Of a stretch of 64,000 nt of DNA, positions 30,742 through 47,726 are shown piece by piece. Position numbers and translations under genes: made by a program. The notes under the pieces are model-generated. The model saw only the letters and a program-made list of their open reading frames with translations, did not search any database and was not told the origin of the DNA. The first letter of the stretch is position 1. Every line of letters begins with the position of its first letter. Where the stretch lies: positions 124,001-188,000 of IMG/VR virus record IMGVR_UViG_3300023174_000045. One strand, given 5' to 3'.

Positions 30742-30767
30742 TTAAATACACACAAACAAGGCAACGC

Positions 30768-35802: not shown

Positions 35803-36017
35803 CAGCAACAAAAGCCACCGGCGTTGAAGGATGTTTAATACGCGGCCATGACGGCGAATATTACTTCCGTGTGTACGATGCTGAACACAATTTTGTGGAC
35901 TATGATTTGGCGCACACGGATTTGAGCATCACAATCACAGACCCAGATGCGTTCTTTTACAGCGATGAATACAGTGCTAGACTGGATCACGCACCTGCCA
36001 CACTGGGAATAGAATAA
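35799..36017 (+). CDS. Hypothetical protein
   Basis: ATGA overlap. Confidence 0.7.
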   Translation: MTATKATGVEGCLIRGHDGEYYFRVYDAEHNFVDYDLAHTDLSITITDPDAFFYSDEYSARLDHAPATLGIE

Positions 36018-36271
36018 TGGCCACCACTCCCGTTGACGACGACTTTGACATGCCCGATCTCACTGACGAGATGCTGTCGGAGTTCAAACCGCTGACTGAC
36101 TTGGCTCACACTGATCTGCACATGGGCGCGGCTGTAGTGCAACCATTCAACGCACCCAAAGTAGAGCCGTTTGATTGGGTCAGCGTCATTGCAAATGCCG
36201 CTGTGGGCGCAGGTTATCTGGTTGCTGTTTGGCTATTTGTGAAGGTATGGGCGTGGGTGTTGTTCAGTTAG
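36017..36271 (+). CDS. Hypothetical membrane protein
   Basis: C-terminal hydrophobic helix. Confidence 0.65.
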   Translation: MATTPVDDDFDMPDLTDEMLSEFKPLTDLAHTDLHMGAAVVQPFNAPKVEPFDWVSVIANAAVGAGYLVAVWLFVKVWAWVLFS

Positions 36272-36317
36272 GCAAAATTGCTCTAGCTAGGTCACAGGGC
36301 TAAAACGTTATATATAC

Positions 36318-36455
36318 ATGAAGCGAGAAATCATCAATCAAGTACGCGAGCTGTTAGAACGCAATCTCAGCACCGCAGAAATAGCGCACAGGATGGGCAT
36401 TGATTTGGACTTGGTCAAAATGGCCATAGACGTTATCAACCAACTGCTGACCTAA
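36318..36455 (+). CDS. 45-aa HTH-like protein
   Basis: LSTAEIAHRMGIDLDLV; not in track. Confidence 0.6.
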   Translation: MKREIINQVRELLERNLSTAEIAHRMGIDLDLVKMAIDVINQLLT

Positions 36456-36466
36456 CCCACTCTGGG

Positions 36467-36495
36467 TTGACTATAAATAAAATTCCTGTTACAAT
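36467..36495 (+). promoter_or_regulatory. Promoter for first tRNA block
   Basis: TTGACT-17-TACAAT. Confidence 0.7.
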
Positions 36496-36503
36496 ACATT
36501 ATT

Positions 36504-36578
36504 GGGCTGATAGCTTAATGGTAAAGCAGTCGACTCATAATCGATTGAGTCTAGGTTCAATTCCTAGTCAGCCCACCA
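36504..36578 (+). tRNA. tRNA CAT, Ile2-like (or Met)
   Basis: Cloverleaf, CGACTCATAATCG arm as in ileX, CCA. Confidence 0.85.
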
Positions 36579-36581
36579 ACA

Positions 36582-36656
36582 CTGGCGTTAGTATAATGGA
36601 TAATACAAAGAGCTTCTACCTCTTGAATGTGGGTTCGATTCCTGCACGCCGGACCA
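36582..36656 (+). tRNA. tRNA-Arg(TCT)
   Basis: Cloverleaf, CCA. Confidence 0.9.
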
Positions 36657-36670
36657 GTAAATACAACAGT

Positions 36671-36753
36671 GCGGGTGTGGTGGAATTGGTAGACACACCT
36701 GGTTTAAGCCCAGACGCTAAGGCGTGAGAGTTCAAGTCTCTCCACCCGTACCA
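36671..36753 (+). tRNA. tRNA-Leu(TAA)
   Basis: Cloverleaf with variable arm, CCA. Confidence 0.9.
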
Positions 36754-36764
36754 AAGGAACAATC

Positions 36765-37238
36765 ATGAGCGATATCAAAATTGAACCACATCATGACAGC
36801 GAAGGCACTGAAGATGACTTCTTTGATGACTTTCGTGCCAATGTGGCTCGATTAGAAGCCGAGCGCCGAGCCAGTGATGAGTTTAAAATCAACAACATGG
36901 AATATGACATGAGCCAGGCCGAGTGGTTTGTAAGCAAGGTGCGTGGCAGTGACAACTACGCACAGAACTTGTATGCTGCCATGTGCAACAACAGTTTTCA
37001 AAAGCAAGATGTTTGGCTGGTGCTGAAAGATGCGCACTGGAGTTGTAGTTGGCGTTACGCTGGTGGTGTTGTGGCTGACTTTAGAGATTGCAACGAAGAC
37101 TACATGAACTGGTACTGCTCAGGCATTGGTCCCAAAGAAGACACTGAGTTTGTGGGCGAAGGCACAGTCACAGACGAAATAGCCGCAGATTTGGCACTCC
37201 TGGGATGGCGTGTGATTGAAGATCCCGACAGCGAATAA
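36765..37238 (+). CDS. Hypothetical protein
   Basis: SD AAGGA. Confidence 0.75.
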   Translation: MSDIKIEPHHDSEGTEDDFFDDFRANVARLEAERRASDEFKINNMEYDMSQAEWFVSKVRGSDNYAQNLYAAMCNNSFQKQDVWLVLKDAHWSCSWRYAGGVVADFRDCNEDYMNWYCSGIGPKEDTEFVGEGTVTDEIAADLALLGWRVIEDPDSE

Positions 37239-37242
37239 CAGC

Positions 37243-37860
37243 ATGTACAAATACACCAATGCTACCCCCGATTGGCTGTATCAACAGCCAAATTTAAGTG
37301 TTGATGCATTACCGATTATCAAAAAAGAATTACTAACATTGTTTGAGTTGAGCAAAGAATTCAGTTTGGTTCCTTATACCAGCACATACATGGAAACGGG
37401 CAACAACGAGTTCATAGATCAGTACTGTCCAACATTGTGCAAAGAATTGAAAAAATTAAACCTACGAGATTCACTCAAGGTATTGGCATTTATTTCTGTT
37501 GTGATAGACAAACATTTTCCCGCCCATGTAGACGCTGAGTCAGAAGTGGCGTTGAATATTCCTTTGATCAACTGCGATGGTACCTATACTGTTTGGTACG
37601 ACGGCCAGACACAGTCAAAAGAATTTGACGATTATTTGATAGGCGTAGAATCTGCAAGAACTGCAATAGAAGGAACTGCTGATAGTTTGATAGAAATTGA
37701 TCGCTGCGAGGCCAACGTACCACGTTGGATCAATGTGAATGTGTTGCATAGACCTGAAACACAGCATGACAAATTAAGAGTTGCGGCTAGTTTGCGTTTT
37801 GATCCCGAACCATTGGACAATCATAGGCAGCTTTGGTCGCATTTGACAGTGTCAAAATGA
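37243..37860 (+). CDS. 2OG-Fe(II) oxygenase-like
   Basis: PAHVD, LNIPL, HRP, RVAASLRF. Confidence 0.65.
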   Translation: MYKYTNATPDWLYQQPNLSVDALPIIKKELLTLFELSKEFSLVPYTSTYMETGNNEFIDQYCPTLCKELKKLNLRDSLKVLAFISVVIDKHFPAHVDAESEVALNIPLINCDGTYTVWYDGQTQSKEFDDYLIGVESARTAIEGTADSLIEIDRCEANVPRWINVNVLHRPETQHDKLRVAASLRFDPEPLDNHRQLWSHLTVSK

Positions 37861-37871
37861 ACATGTTGAAA

Positions 37872-37900
37872 TTGACTGTAAACTTGTGTTTTGTTATAAT
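37872..37900 (+). promoter_or_regulatory. sigma70-type promoter
   Basis: TTGACT-17-TATAAT. Confidence 0.75.
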
Positions 37901-37992
37901 ACTAGCAGTGACGTTCACAAGCTATCAAAATCTAGCTGTAGACATCGGTCAAGCCTGGAGTTTGTGTAAATAACAGTCAACCGGAGACTGCT

Positions 37993-38148
37993 ATGAATTT
38001 GGTCAAATATCGAGATGCTGAGATGTGGACGTATACTTGGTTTTATGTGGGTGATACCGGACACATTGTGAGTCCGTATTTTGAAACAGAAAAACAAGCT
38101 CAGGAGTGGTTTGATCAAATTTTTGAAGGTGTTGAGGAGCAGTTATGA
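37993..38148 (+). CDS. 51-aa hypothetical protein
   Basis: SD GGAG, ATGA overlap with next gene. Confidence 0.6.
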   Translation: MNLVKYRDAEMWTYTWFYVGDTGHIVSPYFETEKQAQEWFDQIFEGVEEQL

Positions 38149-38537
38149 AAAAAGTGTTATTTGGTTTGTTATTGGTATCTGGTACAGTTCTGGCACAAGA
38201 TGTGTATGTGGTGGGCGCCCAGCCCAGGTATGTTACTGTGCAACAACAACAATGTCATGTAGTCAACGTGACTGAAAACAACAGCGGCGTTGGCACTGTG
38301 ATTGGTGCTGTGGCTGGTGGTGTAATCGGACATCAAGTGGGTCGTGGGTTTGGTCGCGATGTGGCCACTGTGTTGGGCACCGGCATTGGCGCTTCGGTGG
38401 GACAACGCATTGGACAAGATCAACAACAAACAGTGACCAAGCAAGTTTGTGACATGGTACCAGTTGTCATACAACAAGGTGAAACTGTGACATTTAATTA
38501 CAAGGGACGAGTGTTTACACAAGTTTTTGGTAATTAA
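38145..38537 (+). CDS. Secreted glycine-zipper 2TM protein (YcfJ-like)
   Basis: Signal peptide, GAVAGGVIGHQVGRG. Confidence 0.8.
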   Translation: MKKVLFGLLLVSGTVLAQDVYVVGAQPRYVTVQQQQCHVVNVTENNSGVGTVIGAVAGGVIGHQVGRGFGRDVATVLGTGIGASVGQRIGQDQQQTVTKQVCDMVPVVIQQGETVTFNYKGRVFTQVFGN

Positions 38538-38539
38538 AG

Positions 38540-38930
38540 TTATTGCTGTATGAAGCCGAGAGAAAAGTGTTCTGGACGGGGGTGCGAATCCCCCCAGGTC
38601 CACCATAAAGAAATTTGATGAAACCAAAAAAAGTAAAACAGTATTTTGTTATAGTAGACAAAGATGACACAGTAAAAAGAGTGTGTTGGGCACCTTTACT
38701 GTGGGATATTCCTAACCTGGGATATCGTTTTACAGGATTTGACGGTGGTATTCCAAAGTTTCTTTATGTCGGGCCTGCATAGTTTCGACAGGGCAACAAG
38801 TAACAGAGTGGACAGCACGGTAGGCGATGACCGTTAATCAAGCAAAAAACGTAAATGCAAACGACGAACAGTTCGCTTTGGCAGCCTAAACACTGCCTAG
38901 GGTAGGAAATACCTCGTAACAGAAACAACC
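38540..38930 (+). ncRNA. ssrA: Circularly permuted (two-piece) tmRNA, tag ANDEQFALAA
   Basis: T arm and CCA end at 38605 precede 5' GGGCCTG at 38771; G3:U70; tag 38857-38889; ends approximate. Confidence 0.92.
38618..38782 (+). CDS. Possible 54-aa ORF in tmRNA intervening segment
   Basis: Open ATG-TAG, no clear SD. Confidence 0.3.
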   Translation: MKPKKVKQYFVIVDKDDTVKRVCWAPLLWDIPNLGYRFTGFDGGIPKFLYVGPA

Positions 38931-38960
38931 CAAAAGGCCTTGACGGGCCTTTTGTCTTTG
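38931..38960 (+). terminator. Intrinsic terminator after tmRNA
   Basis: CAAAAGGCCT-TGAC-GGGCCTTTTG. Confidence 0.8.
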
Positions 38961-38988
38961 TGTATACTACACTATTGAGGAGAACAAC

Positions 38989-39180
38989 ATGAGCAAAGGC
39001 ACACGACCCCGTCCGTCAGTGGTCAGTCAACAAGAACTGGCTGCAAGGCACGAAGCCATATTTGGCCGGAAGCCACCACGAGAACGTTATGTTCCGCCAC
39101 CCTTGCCACCTGAACTGGCAGGACCCAGTTCTTTTGAACAGCAGTTGGGCACCACAAAACTTCCGCCCGGAAGAACATAA
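38989..39180 (+). CDS. Small Pro-rich hypothetical protein
   Basis: SD GAGGAG. Confidence 0.7.
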   Translation: MSKGTRPRPSVVSQQELAARHEAIFGRKPPRERYVPPPLPPELAGPSSFEQQLGTTKLPPGRT

Positions 39181-39205
39181 ATTGGCAAAAGACATTTAAA
39201 AATCG

Positions 39206-39234
39206 TTGACTTTCTTTCATTCATCATATATAAT
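39206..39234 (+). promoter_or_regulatory. Promoter of attenuator 1
   Basis: TTGACT-17-TATAAT; ATG 6 nt downstream. Confidence 0.8.
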
Positions 39235-39239
39235 ACACT

Positions 39240-39347
39240 ATGAACAAGCAAAACGCCCAACTGTCCTTTGAGATACCCTCACATGATTTACACGATTATG
39301 CACGTGAGGCGCTGGCCTATACTAACAGCGGGTGGAGCGGTACCTAA
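39240..39347 (+). CDS. Leaderless 35-aa leader peptide (attenuator 1)
   Basis: MNKQNAQLSFEIPSHDLHDYAREALAYTNSGWSGT. Confidence 0.65.
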   Translation: MNKQNAQLSFEIPSHDLHDYAREALAYTNSGWSGT

Positions 39348-39367
39348 TACAAAAGTACTACTCAAGC

Positions 39368-39400
39368 AAAAACCCGCCACCTAGGCGGGTTTTTCTTTTT
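39368..39400 (+). terminator. Attenuator 1 terminator
   Basis: AAAAACCCGCC-ACCTA-GGCGGGTTTTT plus T tract. Confidence 0.88.
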
Positions 39401-39404
39401 GTGC

Positions 39405-39548
39405 TAGACCAATAATGGGATAGGTGTTATACTAGAGACTAGTTAGGAAAGCAACACAGCAAAGTTTGCAAAGACCCTACAAAGCGAAGGGATTTTGCAA
39501 AACAAGTTGACCAGAATAGCACAAGGTGTTATACTAGAGACTAGTTAG
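39405..39548 (+). promoter_or_regulatory. Tandem promoters sharing a 25-nt repeat
   Basis: TAGACC/TTGACC-17-TATACT; AGGTGTTATACTAGAGACTAGTTAG at 39422 and 39524. Confidence 0.75.
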
Positions 39549-39731
39549 AAAGCAAGGCGGTCCTCGAATGTAAGAACCCACGCAGAAATGCAAAAAGGGT
39601 TGGAACCAAGGGACACGAAGCGAGTTTGTAGACTCGGCCTCCGCAGGTTAAAACAGCACAGTCGATCGAGACTAGTTGAAAGGTTCGTTAAAATTTTGAT
39701 TGTCATGTAGTCCCTGTCTAGTTACAGGGTA

Positions 39732-39963
39732 CTATATGTAAACACATTAGGGTTACCTAGCCGTTAGGGGTGAACGAAGGCCAGACAGCGCAAGCCGGAT
39801 ACCCATGAAGCAGGAGGGTTCTACAGTATGACGAGACACCATCGAGTCAAAGGGCAAGAACTATCAAACTCCAGGAAGGCGACGGAACAACTGGGCCCGT
39901 AATGAGGTCTTGACGCAAGTTGGTGATGCGTGTCAAGAACTTCCCTAATGTATTTTCATATAG
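39732..39963 (+). ncRNA. Helix-closed ncRNA A (~230 nt)
   Basis: CTATATG..CACATTAGGG pairs with CCCTAATGT..CATATAG; internal hairpins. Confidence 0.7.
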
Positions 39964-39966
39964 CAT

Positions 39967-40042
39967 GCACGGTTCGTCTATCGGTTTAGGACACTAGCCT
40001 TTCACGTTAGTAAGACGGGTTCGATTCCCGTACCGTGTACCA
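39967..40042 (+). tRNA. tRNA-Glu(TTC)
   Basis: Cloverleaf, CCA. Confidence 0.92.
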
Positions 40043-40045
40043 AGT

Positions 40046-40185
40046 TGTCGAGGAACTCCATCCTTAAACGGGGGGCAACACTGGGCCTACGAAGTGGGTG
40101 ATTGCAAAAACCAGAAAGAGCAACGTTGACATTGACGAAAAAATGTCTTACGATGAATAAACGTCCTAATAGGGGCTTGTCGACA
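40046..40185 (+). ncRNA. Candidate ncRNA B
   Basis: TGTCGA/TCGACA closing helix, imperfect extension. Confidence 0.45.
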
Positions 40186-40208
40186 CACAAGTAGCCTGTA
40201 CTAATTTT

Positions 40209-40294
40209 GGAGATGTGGCAGAGTGGTTGATTGCACCAGACTGTAAATCTGGCCCCTAAAAAGCGCGGTGGTTCGAATCCATCCGTCTCCACCA
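40209..40294 (+). tRNA. tRNA-Tyr(GTA)
   Basis: Cloverleaf with variable arm, CCA. Confidence 0.92.
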
Positions 40295-40303
40295 ATTTTG
40301 TTT

Positions 40304-40455
40304 TTATAGTCAAGCATCGATACAGGTATCGTGTAAGGACGCTTACGCTATTCGGGTCCAACCGGCCGGGAACGGATCCTAATATAACTGCTATCGGCTG
40401 TTGCACTCTTAGCGGAGGACGCATAAATTGAGCATCTCTCGGTGCTTGACTATAA
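40304..40455 (+). ncRNA. Helix-closed ncRNA C
   Basis: 17-bp closing helix, three internal hairpins. Confidence 0.7.
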
Positions 40456-40461
40456 GAATTT

Positions 40462-40537
40462 GGTCCTAAAGTGTTCATGGACGCACGACGGCTTGTCACG
40501 CCGTAAGAGTGGGGATCGTTACCCCCTAGGACCGCCA
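40462..40537 (+). tRNA. tRNA-Asp(GTC)
   Basis: Cloverleaf, atypical T loop ATCGTTA, CCA. Confidence 0.88.
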
Positions 40538-40543
40538 AGTTTT

Positions 40544-40622
40544 GCAGATAATGGATAGGGCGGGCATCTATTGGTGCCTAATACTAGTTGCCGCAGAGGT
40601 TCGAGTCCTCTGGTCTGCACCA
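40544..40622 (+). ncRNA. tRNA-like RNA 1 (acceptor and T arm, no canonical D/anticodon arms)
   Basis: GCAGAT/GTCTGC, A73-CCA, AGAGG-TTCGAGT-CCTCT. Confidence 0.65.
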
Positions 40623-40628
40623 AGTTTT

Positions 40629-40727
40629 TGCGTTATAGTATAGTGGCCAGTACGCAAGGGCCCACACAATGAAAATTGTATGGTGGGAATTGCCAGTGTA
40701 GCGATGGTTCGATTCCATCTAACGCAA
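40629..40727 (+). ncRNA. tRNA-like RNA 2 (anticodon arm replaced by GAAA-capped long hairpin)
   Basis: 7-bp acceptor, D arm with GG, T arm; no encoded CCA. Confidence 0.7.
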
Positions 40728-40734
40728 TATCATT

Positions 40735-40952
40735 TTTGAGAGTGTCAGCAAGCGCAGTCACGCTATCTAGGTAAGTTCGAACTACCGAAATAGTAAAAGG
40801 GGACGGGTTCAACTCCCGGGGGATCGGAAGATCCCTGCAGATTGGTTGCTAACTGGACAGGTACCCAAGTGATATCCATCGCGAGCGAGGTCAGGCTAGG
40901 CGGCCGGTAGGTCCTGAATAAATCTACGATAAAAGTGACGTAGGCTCTCAAA
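40735..40952 (+). ncRNA. YrlA-like RNA with circularly permuted tRNA domain
   Basis: T arm, then GGAA-closed acceptor helix, then D arm (40804-40854); 9-bp terminal helix. Confidence 0.65.
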
Positions 40953-40960
40953 TTCAATCG

Positions 40961-41037
40961 GCGACCATAGCTCATTTGGATAGAGCACTGTGCTACGAAC
41001 GCAGGGGTGGGAGGTTCGAATCCTTCTGGTCGCGCCA
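40961..41037 (+). tRNA. tRNA-Arg(ACG)
   Basis: Cloverleaf, CCA. Confidence 0.92.
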
Positions 41038-41132
41038 TGTAAAAACACTCTAAACTGGACGCAGGATCTGAGAAGGTTGAACGTAGGTTGATCACTACTA
41101 GTAAGCTGGAGATCAAGAGTGTTTCTACATGG
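41035..41132 (+). ncRNA. Inter-tRNA helix element
   Basis: CCATGTAAAAACACTCT / AGAGTGTTTCTACATGG. Confidence 0.7.
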
Positions 41133-41207
41133 TGCGTGTCGTCAAGCGGTCAAGACCTCGGATTGTGATTCCGATATGCGTGGGTTCGAATCCCATCATG
41201 CACCCCA
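41131..41207 (+). tRNA. tRNA-His(GTG)
   Basis: Encoded G-1:C73, CCA. Confidence 0.92.
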
Positions 41208-41230
41208 ACACAAGATAAATAAAAGAATAA

Positions 41231-41305
41231 CGCGGGGTAGAGAAGCAGTAACTCGTTAGGCTCATAACCTAAAGATCGGCGGTGCGAATCCGTCCTCCGC
41301 AACCA
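41231..41305 (+). tRNA. tRNA-fMet(CAT)
   Basis: C1:A72 mismatch; only two G-C pairs next to anticodon loop. Confidence 0.85.
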
Positions 41306-41321
41306 AATTTTAGGAGTTTTT

Positions 41322-41729
41322 ATGATAGCAATTAACACGGTAATAAAACCGATGGTGGGCCACGAACAAGAAGCAATTGACAATTTCTATACTTTTCATA
41401 AATCACCACACCCGGAGTTATTTGAATTTTTTAAAGAGTTTGTGGATCAAAATTTAATTTTGAATACGATGTTTTGGCAGCCATATGATGACCGAAATCT
41501 CAATCATTTGCTTAGATACTATGCTGTCAATATGGAAAATGCCGAAATTTTTCAAGAAAAATTATTGAGTGAGTCTGCAGATTTTTCAATGAAAAAATTC
41601 TGGGATCAAAATAAATTTGACTATTCAATTGAGTTGACAGAAATAAACTTTGATGAAGAATTTCCACAATACTATGTTGTAGATAATGAGTCTGGTGGAG
41701 TTTGGGGAGACGTTTGGCCATTGCTTTGA
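41322..41729 (+). CDS. Hypothetical protein, paralogue A
   Basis: SD AGGAG; FEFFKEFVDQNLILN. Confidence 0.75.
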   Translation: MIAINTVIKPMVGHEQEAIDNFYTFHKSPHPELFEFFKEFVDQNLILNTMFWQPYDDRNLNHLLRYYAVNMENAEIFQEKLLSESADFSMKKFWDQNKFDYSIELTEINFDEEFPQYYVVDNESGGVWGDVWPLL

Positions 41730-42208
41730 TATGCGTTGAAGTTTATTGCAGGCCAACAAAAAAATGTGATTTTGTTGCTGTTCGATCGTGGACAGAATTT
41801 ATATGTGCTGAGTATCCAGCGATGTTTGACTTCTTTCAAGAGTGCATTGATCAAAATTTAATTGTGAACAAATTTGCATTAAATGTAGATGGAGTTACAG
41901 ACTTATGGAAATACTACTCCTCCAATCAAACTCAAGCTGAAATTTTTCTTGAAAAATTTAAAAATATGCCTTTGAATTTTTCTAAAGAGAAGTTTTCAAT
42001 GAAAGAATTTTGGAATCGTTATGAGTTTGAAATTGATATGTCACTCAAAGAAATAGATTTTGACAACGAAAAAGAATTATTTGATTTGATAAACAAAGAC
42101 ACCGGTGAGATGTGGGCTACTACATTTCCATTAGGTGGACCGCTTGATAATTATTACCAGTTAGAAAAACATTTTCAGCCACAGTGGTTGACAACAAAAG
42201 ATAAATAA
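41726..42208 (+). CDS. Hypothetical protein, paralogue B (probable TTG start)
   Basis: FDFFQECIDQNLIVN aligns to A; start chosen by alignment. Confidence 0.65.
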   Translation: MICVEVYCRPTKKCDFVAVRSWTEFICAEYPAMFDFFQECIDQNLIVNKFALNVDGVTDLWKYYSSNQTQAEIFLEKFKNMPLNFSKEKFSMKEFWNRYEFEIDMSLKEIDFDNEKELFDLINKDTGEMWATTFPLGGPLDNYYQLEKHFQPQWLTTKDK

Positions 42209-42216
42209 ACTATAAT
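42188..42216 (+). promoter_or_regulatory. Promoter of attenuator 2
   Basis: TTGACA-17-TATAAT exact consensus. Confidence 0.85.
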
Positions 42217-42223
42217 AGGAACT

Positions 42224-42334
42224 ATGATGAAACAACAATTCTGTTCAATGTCCAAGCCCCAAACACTCCAGGCAACAACCTGGCTGTTGGCCAATGGCTC
42301 ATTCAACAGCATTCCAGGAGAACCGGGGTTCTGA
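42224..42334 (+). CDS. Leaderless 36-aa leader peptide (attenuator 2)
   Basis: MMKQQFCSMSKPQTLQATTWLLANGSFNSIPGEPGF. Confidence 0.7.
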   Translation: MMKQQFCSMSKPQTLQATTWLLANGSFNSIPGEPGF

Positions 42335-42361
42335 TTAGACTATATTCGTATACCTAACAAG

Positions 42362-42396
42362 AACCCCGGAACTAAACACTCCGGGGTTTTTCATTT
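42362..42396 (+). terminator. Attenuator 2 terminator
   Basis: AACCCCGGA/TCCGGGGTT 9 bp plus T tract. Confidence 0.85.
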
Positions 42397-42399
42397 AGT

Positions 42400-42578
42400 G
42401 CAACGGCAACGCGAGCCGGTATCACTCTAAACTACAAATGTGGGCGGCCCGGAGGATGGGAAGCTGGTGGTGAAAACGCCAGTGGTAAAATTCCGGAGTA
42501 TCGAAGCATTCTCGGGCCTTGGGGCAAGTGGGTTCATCCATGAAGAGTGCTTCGATACACACATTGGCAACAGTGTGT
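42400..42578 (+). ncRNA. Structured leader / candidate ncRNA D
   Basis: 15-bp helix 42498-42512/42544-42558 plus nested hairpins. Confidence 0.55.
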
Positions 42579-42588
42579 TGAAATTTAT

Positions 42589-42662
42589 TCCGGTGTAGTA
42601 TAATGGCAGTGCGGCGGTCTCCAAAACCGTTAGTGGGAGTTCGATTCTCTCCACCGGAGCCA
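42589..42662 (+). tRNA. tRNA-Trp(CCA)
   Basis: Cloverleaf, CCA. Confidence 0.92.
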
Positions 42663-42669
42663 AGTTAAT

Positions 42670-42744
42670 GGGGGGTTGGTGCTAACGGGAACACATGTGC
42701 TTTGCAAGCATGAGTTAAGGGTTCGATTCCCTTACCCTCCACCA
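42670..42744 (+). tRNA. tRNA-Ala(TGC)
   Basis: G3:U70, CCA. Confidence 0.9.
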
Positions 42745-42766
42745 TAGTCAGTATAAGTATTCACAA

Positions 42767-42856
42767 GGTGCGGTCCTATAATGGTATTAGAGCAGATTGC
42801 TAATCTGTCGCTCGGCGTAATCCGGGTTCTGAGTTCGAGTCTCAGTCGCACCGCCA
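42767..42856 (+). tRNA. tRNA-Ser(GCT)
   Basis: Long variable arm, G73, CCA. Confidence 0.9.
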
Positions 42857-42863
42857 AGAACAT

Positions 42864-42939
42864 TCCCTCGTAGCACAGCGGTAGTTGCGCTTCACTGTTA
42901 ATGAAGATGTCGTTCGTTCGATCCGAACCGAGGGAGCCA
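42864..42939 (+). tRNA. tRNA-Asn(GTT)
   Basis: Cloverleaf, CCA. Confidence 0.92.
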
Positions 42940-42957
42940 AATAAAAAAGGAAACGCA

Positions 42958-43140
42958 ATGTCAGCATTTAACACACACAACGACCCATTGAAACACAAGA
43001 CTGGTAAGCCCAGACTTGGTCCAATGAATGTAGAACAGTTGACCCGACTGTTGGAGAGTGCCAGACCCAAACATCGTGCAAAGATTCAACGTGCCTTGGA
43101 CTACAAGAAAACAATTCAAAAGATCATAGCAAAGGCTTGA
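42958..43140 (+). CDS. Basic 60-aa hypothetical protein
   Basis: SD AAGGA. Confidence 0.65.
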   Translation: MSAFNTHNDPLKHKTGKPRLGPMNVEQLTRLLESARPKHRAKIQRALDYKKTIQKIIAKA

Positions 43141-43145
43141 TATCC

Positions 43146-43219
43146 GCCCTACTAGTATAATGGCATTACACTGGTTTTGTAATCCTGTGATGGCAGTTCG
43201 ATTCTGTCGTGGGGCACCA
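43146..43219 (+). tRNA. tRNA-Thr(TGT)
   Basis: Cloverleaf; two U:U mismatches in anticodon stem. Confidence 0.82.
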
Positions 43220-43271
43220 AATTTTTACAAAGGAGATCTGTCATGAGTAGTGACAAGAGTGACAAACCTAT

Positions 43272-43346
43272 GGGGGTATAACTTAACGGCTAAAGTAGTG
43301 GGCTTTTAACCCATTAATCAGAGTTCGATTCTCTGTGCCCCTACCA
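43272..43346 (+). tRNA. tRNA-Lys(TTT)
   Basis: Cloverleaf, CCA. Confidence 0.9.
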
Positions 43347-43420
43347 TATAAAAACACATTAACAGCGTCGTACCGGTCGCCGGACTTAGGTTGAATTCCT
43401 AATAGTGTGTTTCTATATGG
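43344..43420 (+). ncRNA. Inter-tRNA helix element
   Basis: CCATATAAAAACACATT / AGTGTGTTTCTATATGG. Confidence 0.7.
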
Positions 43421-43494
43421 TAATATAGCATAGTGGCTAATGCAGTTGCTTCATACGCAACCCACCGTTGGTTCGAGTCCAACTATTACCACCA
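43419..43494 (+). tRNA. tRNA-Met(CAT), elongator-like
   Basis: Cloverleaf, CCA. Confidence 0.85.
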
Positions 43495-43500
43495 AGTTTT

Positions 43501-43575
43501 GGCCAGTTAGCTCAGGGGTAGAGCAACGTCTTGATAAGGCGTGGGTCGGTGGTTCGAGACCACCACTGGCTACCA
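43501..43575 (+). tRNA. tRNA-Ile(GAT)
   Basis: Cloverleaf, CCA. Confidence 0.92.
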
Positions 43576-43582
43576 ATTCAGT

Positions 43583-43658
43583 TGGGGTGTCGCCTAGAGG
43601 CCTAAGGCACTGGTCTTTGAAATCAGTATCATGAGTTCGAATCTCATCTCCCCTGCCA
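43583..43658 (+). tRNA. tRNA-Gln(TTG)
   Basis: Unpaired 1:72, G73, CCA. Confidence 0.85.
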
Positions 43659-43665
43659 AACAACG

Positions 43666-43694
43666 TAGACAAACTTTGATGTTTGTTGTATAAT
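43666..43694 (+). promoter_or_regulatory. Internal promoter
   Basis: TAGACA-17-TATAAT. Confidence 0.7.
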
Positions 43695-43702
43695 TACACA
43701 AT

Positions 43703-43777
43703 GCGGGATTAACTCAGGGGTAGAGTGTCAGCCTTCCAAGCTGTTCGTCAGCGGTTCGAATCCGCTATCCCGCTCCA
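43703..43777 (+). tRNA. tRNA-Gly(TCC)
   Basis: U73, CCA. Confidence 0.92.
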
Positions 43778-43797
43778 CTTTAACAGAAAGAAACAAC

Positions 43798-44004
43798 ATG
43801 ACAATTGAGAGTGCCGCAACCTTTTTGGTATGTGTAATTTTATTGAGCTGTGGTATCATAGTGCTGGCCGGTCTAGTATTATTGATCAACAACCTGTTGC
43901 ATCGCTACTGGAAAGATCTAAACTGGACTCTACCTGAGAGCATGCAGTCCGTACGTTATGTTGAAGTTGACAAAACTCAAGAACCCCATTTAGACCGCAA
44001 GTAA
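43798..44004 (+). CDS. Small membrane protein
   Basis: N-terminal hydrophobic helix. Confidence 0.6.
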   Translation: MTIESAATFLVCVILLSCGIIVLAGLVLLINNLLHRYWKDLNWTLPESMQSVRYVEVDKTQEPHLDRK

Positions 44005-44048
44005 TACCGACCCCTTGACGGTTTAGGTCCCTTGTACTTGCGGTCTAA
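43990..44048 (+). other. 14-bp inverted repeat before tRNA-Pro
   Basis: TTAGACCGCAAGTA / TACTTGCGGTCTAA. Confidence 0.7.
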
Positions 44049-44055
44049 TTTTTTA

Positions 44056-44129
44056 CTCCGATTGGTGAAATGGTATCATTCATGGTTTGGGACCATGTGG
44101 CGCAAGTTCGATTCTTGCATCGGAGACCA
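44056..44129 (+). tRNA. tRNA-Pro(TGG)
   Basis: Cloverleaf, CCA. Confidence 0.9.
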
Positions 44130-44135
44130 TGTAAT

Positions 44136-44213
44136 GCAACGGTGGCAGAGCGGCCCAATGCACGGGATTGCAAATCCCGAAAACCACTGGTTCAAATCCA
44201 GTCCGTTGCTCCA
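44136..44213 (+). tRNA. tRNA-Cys(GCA)
   Basis: U73, CCA. Confidence 0.92.
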
Positions 44214-44227
44214 ACAAGAAAGTACCT

Positions 44228-44473
44228 ATGTGGGAATATGTTTTAACGTTTTTTGCTGTGTTGTTCACAGATATTTTTTATACCTACTACCTAAAAGCAG
44301 TACAAGATGAACGTGTGATGGCTGCCAGTGTTTGGGCCACTGTTGTATTTTTGGTAGCCTGCGTAGCAGTGATCAACTACACAACAAATTACTGGTTGCT
44401 GATTCCTGCAGGGCTAGGTGCGTTTTGTGGCACTTGGATAGGCATGAGATTACGGGCTCAACAAAAGCAGTAG
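44228..44473 (+). CDS. Small multi-TM protein (DUF2179-like)
   Basis: Three hydrophobic helices, GAFCGTWIG. Confidence 0.6.
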   Translation: MWEYVLTFFAVLFTDIFYTYYLKAVQDERVMAASVWATVVFLVACVAVINYTTNYWLLIPAGLGAFCGTWIGMRLRAQQKQ

Positions 44474-44493
44474 TGATCGTCTATAAATATAGC

Positions 44494-44889
44494 ATGTCCA
44501 TTTACAATCAGTATTTTTGCCAACATTGTCGTTCTGCGTATTCTAGATCACAAGAAAAATTAACTCCAGGATATTGCAGTTTGAATTGTTCTGTGGTTGA
44601 GTCAAAAAGACAGTCGCAAAAAACTTTCAAAGAACTAACTTTGGAAGACAGAATCAAAAATCGACCTGGTGGCACATATCTTGAGTACAACAGTGGTATT
44701 CCTCCTGAACTGGCTGTAGAAACAACCCCAGTCAAAAGAAGAGAGTACAAATGTGTTTGTTGCGGCATTGCTGATTACAATGGCCGTCCGTTGAAACTAC
44801 AACTGTTTCACCATGACGGTAATCAAAAGAATTTTGACCCAGACAATGTTAAATTTTTGTGTCCAAATTGTTTGAGCCAACATCAATAA
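44494..44889 (+). CDS. HNH-family protein, possibly degenerate
   Basis: CVCC, LQLFHHDGN..N..FLCPNCL; TATAAATA upstream. Confidence 0.7.
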   Translation: MSIYNQYFCQHCRSAYSRSQEKLTPGYCSLNCSVVESKRQSQKTFKELTLEDRIKNRPGGTYLEYNSGIPPELAVETTPVKRREYKCVCCGIADYNGRPLKLQLFHHDGNQKNFDPDNVKFLCPNCLSQHQ

Positions 44890-44895
44890 ATCAAA

Positions 44896-44985
44896 GGAAG
44901 TGTGGCAGAGTCCGGCTGATTGCACCTGTCTTGAAAACAGACGGCTCGAAAGGGTCCGTGAGTTCGAATCTCACCGCTTCCACCA
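44896..44985 (+). tRNA. tRNA-Ser(TGA)
   Basis: Long variable arm; A73 rather than G73. Confidence 0.88.
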
Positions 44986-44991
44986 AAAATC

Positions 44992-45066
44992 GCCTTGTTA
45001 ACTCAGCGGTAGAGTAGCGCCTTTACACGGCGAATGTCGGCGGTTCGATCCCGTCACAAGGTACCA
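44992..45066 (+). tRNA. tRNA-Val(TAC)
   Basis: Cloverleaf, CCA. Confidence 0.92.
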
Positions 45067-45072
45067 ACCAAT

Positions 45073-45148
45073 GGCTCGATAGCTCAGTTGGTAGAGCAGT
45101 AGACTGAAAATCTATGTGTGGGCGGTTCGATCCCGTCTCGAGCCACCA
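45073..45148 (+). tRNA. tRNA-Phe(GAA)
   Basis: Cloverleaf, CCA. Confidence 0.93.
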
Positions 45149-45345
45149 AATGTATTATCCAACACAAACTCATGTTGTTGTGGTTCAAATATGGGATCGT
45201 CTGCATATTGAGGCACAGTGTGTTGGTAAAGAGGATTCACTGTGAATTCTTTGGTTGTGGTCCATGATCGGTTGGGCCTGTAGGGTTCATGGCTAAATGC
45301 GGCATACAGCACCTGCACAGTGTCTCGTAGTTCATATGGAATCAT
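45112..45345 (-). CDS. Possible antisense ORF overlapping tRNA-Phe 3' end
   Basis: 77 aa, TAAATA just upstream on minus strand. Confidence 0.35.
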   Translation of the reverse strand: MIPYELRDTVQVLYAAFSHEPYRPNRSWTTTKEFTVNPLYQHTVPQYADDPIFEPQQHEFVLDNTFGGSRRDRTAHT

Positions 45346-45357
45346 ATTGTATTTAAT

Positions 45358-45434
45358 GCCCCGGTGATGGAATTGGTATACATGCCGGTCTTAGAAGCCG
45401 TATTTTAGGAGTTCGAGTCTCCTCTGGGGCACCA
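45358..45434 (+). tRNA. tRNA-Leu(TAG), short variable loop
   Basis: 77 nt, A73, CCA. Confidence 0.85.
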
Positions 45435-45439
45435 ATTCA

Positions 45440-45514
45440 GGATGTTTAGCACAGCGGTAGTGCATCACCTCGACACGGTGAGGGTCAGTGGTTCAATTCC
45501 ACTAACATCCACCA
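45440..45514 (+). tRNA. tRNA-Val(GAC)
   Basis: Cloverleaf, CCA. Confidence 0.9.
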
Positions 45515-45521
45515 CAAATCT

Positions 45522-45600
45522 GCCCCCATGGACAAATCGGTAAAGTCGTCTCTCTCAAAAGGAGAAGTTGTTCTCTGTTCGAATCAGAGTGGGGGTACCA
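45522..45600 (+). tRNA. tRNA-Leu(CAA), short variable loop
   Basis: 79 nt, A73, CCA. Confidence 0.85.
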
Positions 45601-45608
45601 TTCCTAAT

Positions 45609-45685
45609 GCCCTGGTGGCGCAATTGGTAGACGCACCACTTTGAGGGGGTGTACAGTGTGAGTTCGAGTCTCACCCAGGGCACCA
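45609..45685 (+). tRNA. tRNA-Leu(GAG), short variable loop
   Basis: 77 nt, A73, CCA. Confidence 0.82.
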
Positions 45686-45686
45686 A

Positions 45687-45715
45687 TTGACAACAAATTC
45701 AAAATCAATTACAAT
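45687..45715 (+). promoter_or_regulatory. Internal promoter
   Basis: TTGACA-17-TACAAT. Confidence 0.75.
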
Positions 45716-45723
45716 ACACACAC

Positions 45724-45797
45724 GGGCTGTTAGTTAAATGGGATAACTCTGCCATGGCATGGCAGCATCGGGAGTTCGACTCTCCCACGGTCCACCA
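45724..45797 (+). tRNA. tRNA-Ala(GGC)
   Basis: G3:U70 and A32-U38 as in bacterial Ala(GGC). Confidence 0.92.
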
Positions 45798-45818
45798 CTA
45801 TCAAGAAAGGAGTCAGTG

Positions 45819-46253
45819 ATGAGTGAATTTAACGTATTGGTTGGCAAGCGCATCAATGGCTTGTTCATAGGCGAAGATGCTTGGGCCTTGGTGTTTCGCG
45901 ACATCAATGAACGTTACTATTGTTTTCGCACAGAGAACGATTGTTGCAACGCTGTGTGGTTCAATCACGTAAACGGTGTAGAAACTGTGCTGGGCGAAGG
46001 CAACTTGTTCGATGTCCTGCGTGGTGCCATGGTAACTGCTGTGGAAGACAAAGGCTGGACTGATGATCGCGACGACGAAGATGGCTACGAAGTTGTGCAA
46101 GATGGTTTCTGGACCATAAAAACAGACCGTGGCTACATAGACTTAGAAGTACGCAACAGTCACAACGGCTACTATGGTGGCCGTGTGCGGTATGATGAAG
46201 AGTCCAAGCCTGGTGACATCAAAGATTTACAAGCAGTGACTGAAGATTTTTAA
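45819..46253 (+). CDS. Hypothetical protein
   Basis: SD AAGGAG; RNSHNGYYGG. Confidence 0.75.
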   Translation: MSEFNVLVGKRINGLFIGEDAWALVFRDINERYYCFRTENDCCNAVWFNHVNGVETVLGEGNLFDVLRGAMVTAVEDKGWTDDRDDEDGYEVVQDGFWTIKTDRGYIDLEVRNSHNGYYGGRVRYDEESKPGDIKDLQAVTEDF

Positions 46254-46330
46254 CGGAATATGGCGCAGCCTGGCAGCGCACTTGCATGGGGTGCAAGGGG
46301 TCGCAAGTTCGAATCTTGCTATTCCGACCA
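46254..46330 (+). tRNA. tRNA-Pro(GGG)
   Basis: Cloverleaf, CCA. Confidence 0.92.
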
Positions 46331-46355
46331 ACTATAAATAACCTTGAAAGTGTAT

Positions 46356-46826
46356 ATGAAAAAACTTGATATAGAACAAGTGGCCGAATTTATCCGGACT
46401 CAAAGTCCAGAAACACGCATCTATCTTGGATGCGACAGTGAACGCATCAAAATTGATGGTGCATGGTGGGCTGACTATGTGTTGGCCATTGTGGTTCACA
46501 TCAACGGCAACAACGGTTGCAAACTGTTTGGTGAAGTACATCGTGAACGTGTGTGGGATCAAAAAGCATCCAAGCCGGCCATGCGGCTCATGACTGAAGT
46601 TTACAAAGTTTCAGAACTGTACTTGAAACTGGCAGAAGTGTTGGAAGGGCGCGATGTTGAAGTTCACTTGGACATCAACCCTGACGAAATGCACGGATCA
46701 AGTTGTGTTGTCAGCCAAGCCATCGGTTACATCAAAGGCACATGTAATGTGATTCCTTTTGTGAAGCCTGAGGCTTTTGCAGCCAGCTATGCTGCCGACA
46801 GATTCAAAGGCTTGCGGGCGGCGTAG
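46356..46826 (+). CDS. RNase H-like YkuK/DUF458 family protein
   Basis: IYLGCDS, RLMTEV, EVHLDIN, KPEAFAASYAAD. Confidence 0.8.
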   Translation: MKKLDIEQVAEFIRTQSPETRIYLGCDSERIKIDGAWWADYVLAIVVHINGNNGCKLFGEVHRERVWDQKASKPAMRLMTEVYKVSELYLKLAEVLEGRDVEVHLDINPDEMHGSSCVVSQAIGYIKGTCNVIPFVKPEAFAASYAADRFKGLRAA

Positions 46827-46832
46827 AATATT

Positions 46833-46908
46833 GCGGACGTAGCTCAGTTGGTAGAGCATTACCTTGCCAAGGTAAATGTCGTCGGTTCGAACCCGATCGT
46901 CCGCTCCA
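46833..46908 (+). tRNA. tRNA-Gly(GCC)
   Basis: U73, CCA. Confidence 0.93.
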
Positions 46909-46922
46909 ACTAAAAAGTTTGT

Positions 46923-47576
46923 ATGATCAATCTACCAAAAGAATTTATCTCTGGGCACAGGTATCTTTTTGTGCATGGGCAAAGAAGCAGTGATGCTGAA
47001 TTTGAGGTATGTATTAATGGCAAAACAATCGACAACCCATTTGCAAGCGTTGAACAATTTGATTTAGATCACCCTGATCTTGGTCCAACGCAGTACGCAT
47101 TCAGCACTGAAACTTCTTTTTTGGGAGCCAGGACCATCTGCATCAAAATGCTTAAAGGGTCATTGACTTTGACAAGAGCTAGGGTAAGTTATCCTGCCAA
47201 GATAACCAACAGCGAAGGTATTGACTCATTTGGTTACTATTCATTGTTTCAGCCCATTGGTGATCCAAAGTGGCTTGTTAAGATAAATGGTCAGTTACAA
47301 ACGCTGGAACCACAAGATCAACATTTAACTGGCGAAGTCCACCACAGCATAACTGCTGGAGATGTCCTAGAATACTATCATGTCATGATTGAAGGTCCGA
47401 GCCACTGGTGTATTGCCTATTCACAATCTATACACAATGGAATAATTGATCAACAAGATCCCAACATTGAATCTATATTGCCTATTGATAATCAATCTGG
47501 AGTTGATTATCAATCCAGTAACAATCGATTGAACATTTTAAAAAATCAGCTTTTGGCTGATTACAAAAATAGCTGA
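46923..47576 (+). CDS. Hypothetical protein
   Basis: 217 aa; stop lies inside tRNA-Thr 5' end. Confidence 0.65.
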   Translation: MINLPKEFISGHRYLFVHGQRSSDAEFEVCINGKTIDNPFASVEQFDLDHPDLGPTQYAFSTETSFLGARTICIKMLKGSLTLTRARVSYPAKITNSEGIDSFGYYSLFQPIGDPKWLVKINGQLQTLEPQDQHLTGEVHHSITAGDVLEYYHVMIEGPSHWCIAYSQSIHNGIIDQQDPNIESILPIDNQSGVDYQSSNNRLNILKNQLLADYKNS

Positions 47577-47646
47577 TGTGGCACAGTGGTAGCGCACTCC
47601 CTTGGTAAGGGAGAGGTCGCGGGTTCAATCCCCGCCATCAGCACCA
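47572..47646 (+). tRNA. tRNA-Thr(GGT)
   Basis: Cloverleaf, CCA. Confidence 0.93.
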
Positions 47647-47651
47647 GACAA

Positions 47652-47726
47652 CGGCCTTTGGTGAAATGGATATCATGCTTGTCTTCGAAACAAGCGGTGG
47701 CGGTTCGATCCCGTCAGGGCTGGCCA
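47652..47726 (+). tRNA. tRNA-Arg(TCG)
   Basis: Cloverleaf, CCA. Confidence 0.9.

Follow-up and report, generated by a model that had tools for sequence, protein, structure and literature searches.

The window analysed here, a stretch of 64,000 nucleotides (positions 124,001 to 188,000 of the IMG/VR virus record IMGVR_UViG_3300023174_000045), carries, in front of nine phage tRNA genes, a strong promoter, a 36-codon reading frame predicted to start at the first transcribed base, and a terminator that the end of that frame can disarm by pairing. About 33 dissimilar versions of this unit were found before tRNA arrays in other viral contigs, which suggests that these phages adjust tRNA production to how well ribosomes are translating, although this is inferred from sequence comparison alone. 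Every sequence feature listed for positions 42188-42396 by an earlier sequence-only reading was found, and its observation is therefore confirmed (Table 1). Its interpretation, a ribosome-stalling leader that senses tRNA supply and belongs to a pair of elements with reciprocal codon content, is only partly supported.

Table 1. Features of the attenuator region and of the neighbouring tRNA loci (window coordinates)
Position	Strand	Feature	Observations
42188..42216	+	Sigma-70-type promoter: TTGACA (42188-42193), 17-nt spacer, TATAAT (42211-42216)	12/12 match, the only one in 35000-49000; conserved in all relatives, while the sequence upstream of it is unrelated
42224..42334	+	Leader reading frame, ATG at 42224, 36 codons plus TGA (42332-42334); starts 7 nt after the -10 box, mRNA predicted to have no 5' leader	36 codons in all 45 distinct relatives of the main type and 42 in the L015/L070 lineage, which carries in-frame +3 and +15 nt insertions; stop varies only between TGA and TAA; indels of 1-2 nt occur only after the stop
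42255..42260		AGCCCC, proposed partner in a 1:2 pairing	Present, but the pairing (AGCCCC/GGGGTT) shows no covariation, its sixth pair is present in only 5 of 47 relatives, and it is not used in the minimum-energy folds
42268..42283	+	Hairpin H1 inside the frame (CCAGG, 6-nt loop, CCTGG); possible polymerase pause hairpin	100% paired in relatives; fifth pair GC 24, AU 17, GU 4, UA 2
42284..42309	+	Hairpin H2 inside the frame (CTGTTG ... CAACAG)	86% of cells paired, little covariation; by eye, a different sequence forms a hairpin at the same place in L015
42323..42332	+	5' strand of the antiterminator, CCGGGGTTCT (codons 34-36 and first base of the stop)	Exact reverse complement of AGAACCCCGG (42360-42369); pair at columns 120:162 is GC 23, GU 19, AU 4, other 1; pair at 125:157 is UA 43, CG 2
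42335..42359	+	Inner part of the antiterminator hairpin (TTAG/CTAA, then TATA-TTCG-TATA)	Seen in minimum-energy folds; 93% paired in relatives
42360..42370	+	Shared strand: 3' strand of the antiterminator and 5' arm of the terminator (AACCCCGGA, 42362-70)	Takes part in both covarying helices
42371..42396	+	Terminator loop (ACTAAACAC, 9 nt), 3' arm TCCGGGGTT (42380-88) and T-run	9-bp GC-rich stem; pair at 162:178 is CG 24, UA 22, UG 1; helix 99.8% paired; loop sequence conserved in more than 120 viral contigs
42397..42588	+	Conserved structured spacer RNA (RNA D) between the terminator and tRNA-Trp (193 nt beyond the terminator)	Fold z = -3.3; compensatory changes visible in 41 relatives; no strong promoter in this window, best promoter-like match scores only 8; homologues follow related units in other subfamilies
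42589..43658	+	tRNA block under the unit: Trp, Ala, Ser, Asn, Thr, Lys, Met, Ile, Gln	Ends before the next promoter
43666..43694		Promoter directly before tRNA-Gly	Limits the block above to Trp to Gln
39206..39394	+	Unit 1, a second element of the same outer design: promoter 39206-39234, frame 39240-39347, terminator 39368-39394	Ahead of tRNA-Glu, Tyr, Asp, an amber suppressor, Arg, His and Met; all indels in the frame are multiples of 3 in 13 relatives; belongs to a second family
36582; 47652		Further Arg tRNAs	Correct the sequence-only reading, which placed the Arg tRNAs under attenuator 1

The anatomy of the element is far beyond chance. The RNA from 42224 to 42396 folds with z = -4.5 against shuffled sequences, and its minimum-energy fold uses the 10-bp helix rather than the terminator, the competing hairpin being -21.2 kcal/mol and the terminator -16.1 kcal/mol; a scan for terminators with loops of up to 8 nt missed the latter only because its loop has 9. 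The same fold also pairs the 5' end with the terminator tail, an interaction that we rejected because the tail varies in relatives. A total of 47 distinct homologues were found (loci are numbered with the prefix L), all of them inside tRNA arrays and nearly all with a Trp or Ala tRNA about 350-400 nt downstream, and both the terminator and the antiterminator covary among them. One related locus, L001, is 100% identical to the window over its 12.5 kb, so it is the same contig or an identical copy and gave no independent information. The first eight codons of the frame are invariant, which is partly an ascertainment effect of the 20-nt search pattern, although eight sequences found by other routes also had them invariant. 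The peptide, said in the sequence-only reading to lack Asp, His, Arg and Tyr, also contains one Glu (GAA, codon 33) and no Val, and that absence is not conserved, because codon 33 is E, D, A or G in relatives and R appears in locus L003.

The same terminator, including its loop, follows about 33 dissimilar small reading frames, and every such small-frame unit lies upstream of tRNA genes. Among 33 representative units, 28 have a promoter scoring at least 9/12 with a 17-nt spacer, and the ATG lies 6-7 nt after the -10 box in 21 of these and 9-10 nt after it in the other 7. In 31 of 33 the terminator 5' arm is predicted to pair with the end of the frame, whose stop lies 0-29 nt after that strand and 23-38 nt before the terminator arm, so placed that a ribosome there would cover one strand of the alternative helix; in the window the stop overlaps the 3' end of the strand, at 42332. 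The terminator survives in the minimum-energy fold of only 18% of these units, but in 97% after shuffling of the upstream 79 nt and in 16/16 cases where the same terminator ends an ordinary gene. The gap to the first tRNA is only 14-29 nt in three loci (L088, L125 and L176), and about 22 of 33 units have no strong promoter in the gap. However, about 9 of 33 do have one, and about half of the close relatives of the window's element carry an extended -10 box (TGCTATAAT) just before the spacer RNA, about 50 nt downstream of the terminator, and therefore read-through is not always the only route to the tRNAs.

A correlation between leader codons and downstream anticodons across genomes had been proposed beforehand as the test of tRNA sensing, and it is present across families. 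In permutation tests on 12 clusters, leader residues match the first 3 downstream tRNAs at 0.185 against 0.139 for shuffled pairings (p = 2e-4) and the first 5 at 0.275 against 0.216 (p = 3e-4), and on 27 groups z is about 4. Codon/anticodon matching to the first 5 tRNAs is 0.213 against 0.163 (p = 7e-4), whereas ordinary proteins from the same loci show no such correlation (0.142 against 0.139). The signal is concentrated just before the switch, since the own/other match ratio is 0.99 for N-terminal codons and 1.3-1.5 for the ten codons preceding it. As an example, the leader core W-M-L-E-C-G-D of L099 precedes tRNAs Met, Glu, Trp, Gly, Cys and Asp, and L125 and L126 are similar. Nevertheless, the effect is modest, about 1.3-fold, there are no tandem runs of regulatory codons, the clusters are not fully independent, and within the largest cluster the signal is weak (p = 0.02-0.11). 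In the window alone the match is 21/35 against 0.44 (p = 0.04). The control with upstream tRNAs is weak, because only one of the 12 clusters, or 5 subfamily groups, has tRNAs upstream, and a second pattern scan yielded only 7 new loci, too few for a hold-out replication. Within the superfamily, the window type has no His, Arg or Tyr in either the leader or the nearby array (Arg appears only at the far end), while sister types have His and Arg in both, and Tyr in both in about half of them.

The claim that unit 1 is a matching attenuator with reciprocal codon content is not supported. Leader 1 is not enriched for its block's codons (9/34 against a background of 0.24, p = 0.44), and unit 1 in this window has only a 6-bp alternative helix, over which its terminator wins. 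The unit-1 family is also not enriched overall for Glu, Tyr and Asp, which make up 33 of 201 residues (about 16%), equal to the background, although two of its loci, L185 and L189, lack Tyr in the leader and lack tRNA-Tyr in the block.

DNA searches of cultured phages found no homologue of the element, a nearby protein gave none, and the tRNA block gave only tRNA-level similarity; the closest cultured relatives by DNA polymerase are jumbo phages about 50% identical. Rfam gave no match, T-box included, in 42188-42588 at E up to 1, and neither Pfam nor PHROGs matched either leader peptide. In bacterial genomes, the scan for the terminator found 4 MAG contigs, two of which carry phage-like tRNA arrays (one also a tmRNA) while the other two have no tRNAs, and no host was identified from them.

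We envisage that the element is a ribosome-dependent transcription attenuator that gates a block of phage tRNA genes, a reading to which we give a probability of roughly 0.6. In this model, transcription begins at or 1 nt before the AUG, and a 70S ribosome starts on the 5'-terminal AUG. If the ribosome keeps pace with the polymerase, it would sit on codons 34-36 and the stop when the shared strand emerges, which could then pair only with the terminator 3' arm, and a transcript of about 165 nt would be released. If the ribosome lags, because charged tRNA for leader codons is short or translation is poor in general, the 5' strand of the antiterminator would be free and would pair first with the shared strand in the more stable helix, so that the terminator could not form and the polymerase would run on through the spacer RNA into tRNA-Trp to tRNA-Gln. 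Because the leader is biased towards codons read by the tRNAs just downstream, the circuit would be a negative feedback on the phage's own tRNA supply. Our comparisons establish the sequence features, the two covarying helices, the conservation of the frame, its tie to tRNA arrays and the modest codon/tRNA correlation, while the transcription start, translation of the frame, polymerase-ribosome coupling, the response of read-through to charged tRNA and the direction of that response are inferred. Evidence for translation within the unit-2 family, that of the element under study, rests on one lineage's two in-frame indels, the TGA/TAA-only stop and the ATG position, because substitutions in the frame show no third-position excess (22/20/26), amino-acid changes are radical, a second frame is also open, and only about 3 stops would be expected under neutrality, which left the stop-avoidance test without power.

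It is possible, though unlikely, that these units are ordinary small-protein cassettes, each an early gene for a 20-53-residue peptide with its own promoter and a shared, recombination-prone terminator, the tRNAs being made by leaky read-through or from other promoters without any sensing. The terminator also ends an unrelated 133-residue gene, upstream flanks differ between relatives, genes are inserted between tRNA-Met and the unit, some peptide motifs recur across subfamilies, some units have a promoter in the gap, and conserved promoter/terminator cassettes are documented in phages (PMC2839356; PMC4122927). However, this view does not explain why the last codons pair with the terminator arm in 31 of 33 units while the same terminator at gene ends stays intact in the fold, why every unit precedes tRNAs, or why leader composition tracks the next tRNAs when other proteins do not, and the variable positions change radically. 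The presence of nearby radical-SAM genes also led us to consider a RiPP precursor, which explains neither the RNA switch nor the link to tRNAs.

A noncoding regulatory RNA, in which the 165-nt transcript is a structured small RNA or a riboswitch-like element whose 5' domain binds a ligand, a protein or a tRNA, with the frame incidental, is somewhat less likely still. It is favored by the lack of a third-position excess, by the covarying hairpins inside the frame, by the conserved terminator loop, by an AATAGT-like motif that by eye appears to recur in different reading frames in two subfamilies, and by nucleotide-level conservation exceeding that of the neighbouring protein gene, as the element in L004 is close to the window's (mean column identity 86% over four sequences) while the L004 protein P0013 is 58% identical. 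Against it stand the position of the ATG after near-consensus -10 boxes, frames of 20-53 codons that always end 0-29 nt after the antiterminator strand, indels that are multiples of three inside the frames of both families but not after the stop, the absence of any Rfam match, and the codon/anticodon correlation, which has no explanation for an untranslated RNA. A switch coupled to translation that does not sense tRNA, but only reports whether ribosomes are available at all (for example, early against late infection, or host shut-off) or insulates a very strong promoter, with codon bias as a by-product, is also held to be improbable. The default fold is read-through, so any loss of translation would open the gate, leaders carry one or two codons of each kind, and the codon effect is modest; yet the match is specific to the first downstream tRNAs, is absent from control proteins and is concentrated just before the switch, and within families Tyr, His and Arg codons tend to come and go with the matching tRNA genes.

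The closest described systems are the leader-peptide attenuators of amino-acid operons (trp, his, leu, pheA, and the multi-amino-acid types thr and ilvGMEDA, which also mix codon kinds), in which a short frame is translated during transcription, terminator and antiterminator share a strand, the position of the ribosome decides the fold, and slow decoding gives read-through. Here, the regulated genes are tRNAs and not biosynthetic enzymes, so that the product is the molecule whose charged form would be sensed, the mRNA is predicted to be leaderless, regulatory codons do not form runs, the element is phage-encoded, and no 1:2 anti-antiterminator was found, the fold without a ribosome being read-through rather than super-attenuation. 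Leaderless polycysteine short ORFs act as cysteine-responsive attenuators in mycobacteria (bioRxiv 10.1101/834739), where a short frame at the 5' end of the transcript controls downstream genes by its decoding; those frames have consecutive Cys codons and control protein-coding operons. T-box riboswitches also use competing terminator and antiterminator in response to tRNA charging, but bind the tRNA directly, have no reading frame, and control aminoacyl-tRNA synthetase and related genes, mainly in Gram-positive bacteria. PeSL promoter/stem-loop cassettes of T4-type phages (PMC2839356; PMC4122927) likewise repeat a stem-loop conserved almost to the base across many genomes, bordering small genes in variable regions; they are described as recombination modules, with no competing helix, link to tRNA genes or codon relation as far as the abstracts show. 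As to an early promoter fused to the stem-loop as one composite, the window has no strong promoter in the 198 nt after the terminator, while about half of the close relatives have TGCTATAAT about 50 nt downstream. The T4 tRNA gene cluster also embeds non-tRNA transcripts, the small stable RNAs species 1 and 2, which are not reported to carry a reading frame or a switch and compare better with the spacer RNA than with the attenuator. We found no published description of the element.

A more far-reaching reading, which the data do not exclude but which remains tentative and on balance unlikely, is that phages of this group carry a modular family of leaderless attenuators that make each tRNA block self-regulating, transcribed when the cell's charged pool of those same tRNAs falls. 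That would include depletion by host anticodon nucleases or by starvation, the array then acting as an inducible, codon-addressed counter-measure rather than a constitutive supplement; the anti-defence purpose put forward by the sequence-only reading is conjecture. Phage tRNA arrays are usually discussed as fixed supplements for codon usage or as replacements for tRNAs destroyed by host defences, and how their expression is controlled is largely unknown. On our model the element is small and needs only host RNA polymerase and ribosomes, and it would provide a compact, portable sensor of decoding capacity. An attenuator whose sensed molecule is the charged form of its own product would be a new regulatory logic for tRNA genes, and would give a direct handle on when and why phages make tRNAs.

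The window is a piece of an uncultured jumbo phage (100% identical over 12.5 kb to IMG/VR contig 3300023174_000045), whose family-B DNA polymerase is about 50% identical to those of Sinorhizobium phage Phosso and Agrobacterium phage Atu_ph07. It carries an array of 34 tRNA genes together with a permuted (two-piece) tmRNA of the beta-proteobacterial type, whose tag, ANDEQFALAA, is also present on contig L189, a related tRNA locus discussed below. Within this array, the element that the sequence-only reading had described ahead of tRNA-Trp (unit 2) was confirmed, although that reading had missed one Glu codon and the absence of Val in the leader. Its promoter is the only 12/12 match in 14 kb, the ATG lies 7 nt after the -10 box, and the frame of 36 codons ends in TGA. 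The transcript folds much better than its shuffles (z = -4.5), and its best fold uses the 10-bp helix formed with the end of the frame, extended by two inner helices, rather than the terminator, the energies being -21.2 and -16.1 kcal/mol, respectively. Because a promoter abuts tRNA-Gly, the block behind unit 2 is Trp, Ala, Ser, Asn, Thr, Lys, Met, Ile, and Gln. Near-consensus promoters also precede a tRNA-Met and a tRNA-Ala, and the array is therefore cut into several transcription blocks, only some of which have a leader unit.

Positions of the features in the window
Feature	Position	Remarks
Cluster of genes	29126-32992	includes a 471-residue radical-SAM protein
tRNA array	36.5-47.7 kb	34 tRNA genes and the tmRNA
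Near-consensus promoter	36467-36495	ends 8-9 nt before tRNA-Met
Permuted tmRNA	38510-38980	tag ANDEQFALAA
Unit 1	39206-39394	same outer design as unit 2
Promoter-like repeats	39405-39700	between unit 1 and tRNA-Glu
tRNA with anticodon CTA	40544-40622	amber suppressor in block 1, labelled Pyl by ARAGORN
Rfam tRNA match	40629-40727	99 nt, 43 bits, not called by ARAGORN
Unit 2 promoter	42188-42216	TTGACA, 17 nt, TATAAT
Unit 2 ATG	42224	
Antiterminator strand	42323-42332	exact complement of 42360-42369
Unit 2 stop (TGA)	42332-42334	
Strand complementary to the antiterminator strand	42360-42369	
Terminator	42362-42370 with 42380-42388	9-bp stem, 9-nt loop, T-run
Structured spacer RNA	42397-42588	about 190 nt, before tRNA-Trp
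Near-consensus promoter	43666-43694	ends 8-9 nt before tRNA-Gly
Near-consensus promoter	45687-45715	ends 8-9 nt before tRNA-Ala

Close relatives of unit 2 were reached by three routes, namely contigs encoding homologues of the upstream protein, two scans of viral sequences, and one metagenome scan, which together gave an alignment of 47 distinct homologues. The promoter is kept in them while the DNA before it is unrelated, and all copies lie inside tRNA arrays, with tRNA-Met 124-1000 nt upstream and tRNA-Trp or tRNA-Ala about 350-400 nt downstream in nearly all. The terminator covaries (CG 24, UA 22, UG 1), and so do the competing helix (GC 23, GU 19, AU 4, other 1; UA 43, CG 2) and a hairpin inside the frame (GC 24, AU 17, GU 4, UA 2). 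The frame has 36 codons in all 45 distinct relatives of the main type, and the L015/L070 lineage, named after two of the loci, has in-frame insertions of +3 and +15 nt; indels of 1 and 2 nt occur only after the stop, which changes only between TGA and TAA. However, substitutions fall 22/20/26 by codon position and replacements are radical, which speaks against coding selection on the peptide itself, and a test of stop avoidance had no power. The competing 1:2 pairing offered by the sequence-only reading is not supported. Between the terminator and tRNA-Trp lies a conserved, structured spacer RNA that has three helices with clear compensatory changes in 41 relatives and no Rfam match; its homologues follow related putative attenuators in other subfamilies, and about half of the close relatives have an extended -10 box (TGCTATAAT) right before it.

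A search for the terminator together with its loop (GGAACTAAACACTCC) found more than 120 viral contigs (loci L076-L198), which fall into two classes. In the first, the terminator ends a 133-residue gene of unknown function, with no tRNAs nearby, and stays intact in the predicted fold in 16 of 16 cases. In the second, it follows small frames of 20-53 codons, which fall into 33 dissimilar representatives. Of these, 28 have a promoter scoring at least 9/12, always with a 17-nt spacer, and the ATG lies 6-7 nt after the -10 box in 21 and 9-10 nt after it in 7. In 31, the 5' arm of the terminator is predicted to pair with the end of the frame before the 3' arm exists, and the terminator survives in the full fold in only 6 of 33, against 97% after shuffling of the upstream sequence. 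The stop lies 0-29 nt after the antiterminator strand and 23-38 nt (mostly 30-36) before the terminator arm. Every unit is upstream of tRNA genes, and most sit at the head of the array; in the loci L088, L125, and L176 only 14-29 nt separate the terminator from the first tRNA, and about 22 of the 33 have no strong promoter in the gap, in which cases the tRNAs can only be made by transcription through the terminator. Conservation of a terminator loop behind unrelated leaders suggests a second role, such as a protein-binding site or a recombination module. Only four hits occur in bacterial genome bins, two of which carry phage-like tRNA arrays and two of which carry no tRNAs.

The sequence-only reading had proposed a correlation of codons with anticodons as its test, which we ran by scoring leader residues against the amino acids of the first downstream tRNAs and shuffling leaders between 12 single-linkage clusters. 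The match was 0.185 against 0.139 in shuffled pairings for the first three tRNAs (p = 2e-4) and 0.275 against 0.216 for the first five (p = 3e-4), whereas ordinary proteins of the same loci gave 0.142 against 0.139 for the first three (p = 0.12). Matching of codons to anticodons with wobble gave 0.213 against 0.163 for the first five tRNAs (p = 7e-4), and with 27 finer groups z is about 4. The signal is absent from N-terminal codons (ratio 0.99) and strongest in the ten codons before the antiterminator strand (1.3-1.5). Nevertheless, the effect is modest, there are no runs of codons, the clusters are not fully independent, p is 0.02-0.11 within the largest cluster, and the control with upstream tRNAs had only five groups. 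As examples, the core W-M-L-E-C-G-D of the leader at locus L099 precedes Met, Glu, Trp, Gly, Cys, and Asp, the L125 leader precedes Trp, Pro, Cys, Met, Thr, Ser, and Gly, and the Ser/Leu/Arg-rich leader at locus L126 precedes Ser, Arg, Leu, Leu, and Leu. Within the unit-2 superfamily, the window type has no His, Arg, or Tyr in the leader, and its array has no His or Tyr tRNA (Arg only at the far end), while sister types carry His and Arg in both leader and array, and Tyr in both in about half of them. In the window alone, leader 2 matches its own block (21/35 against a background of 0.44, p = 0.04) and is depleted in Glu, Tyr, Asp, Arg, and His (1/35, p = 0.0008). Contrary to the claim that leader 1 is rich in the codons of its block, it is not enriched for them (9/34, p = 0.44), and only a core chosen after the fact is enriched (9/18). 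The interpretation put forward in the sequence-only reading is only partly supported.

The frame of unit 1 is clearly maintained, with indels of -9, -12, -3, and +3 nt and a fixed stop. Unit 1 belongs to a second family with a different terminator, in which the blocks behind the units start with Glu, usually followed by Tyr and Asp; two members, L185 and L189, lack Tyr in the leader and lack tRNA-Tyr in the block. Several relatives have a strong antiterminator, but in this window the alternative helix is only 6 bp and the terminator wins. The family is not enriched overall for Glu, Tyr, and Asp, which by our count make up 33 of 201 residues, about 16%, which equals the background used for the leaders of the window. 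Two to three repeats of an extended -10 promoter-like unit (TGTTATACT followed by AGAGACTAGTTAG) lie after unit 1, with no ATG at the predicted start; they may be further small RNAs. In block 1, the Rfam tRNA match that sits next to the amber suppressor is possibly a tRNA with an insertion. Further leader units with variant terminators lie ahead of other tRNA blocks in the contigs L085 (unit at oriented position 8360) and L068 (oriented position 1025); for example, the L085 leader contains Asp, Glu, Asn, Tyr, Cys, His, and Val and precedes exactly those seven tRNAs. Elsewhere in the window, a cluster of genes includes a radical-SAM protein, and a relative's locus also has a SPASM-domain radical-SAM gene, but no link to the small peptides was found.

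The best-supported model is ribosome-dependent attenuation with read-through as the default. In this view, a ribosome that reaches the stop in step with the polymerase would hide or unwind the antiterminator strand, so that the terminator forms, whereas a lagging ribosome would leave that strand free and the tRNA block would be transcribed. The near-constant 30-36 nt from the stop to the terminator arm is close to the mRNA length spanned between ribosome and polymerase in published structures of coupled complexes, and the hairpins in the frame may act as pause sites. While the features, their covariation, and the codon match were observed in the sequences, all of these steps, including the attenuation itself, are inferred.

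The mechanism class is classical. Leaderless regulatory short frames are known from mycobacteria (bioRxiv 10.1101/834739), and conserved promoter/terminator cassettes are known from T4-type phages (PMC2839356, PMC4122927), but full-text searches found no description of attenuators or leader peptides before phage tRNA genes. What is new in these putative attenuators, which we consider of high interest, is the product that would be regulated (tRNAs), the mixed-codon leaders matched to the adjacent genes, the absence of an anti-antiterminator, and the modular spread across many phages.
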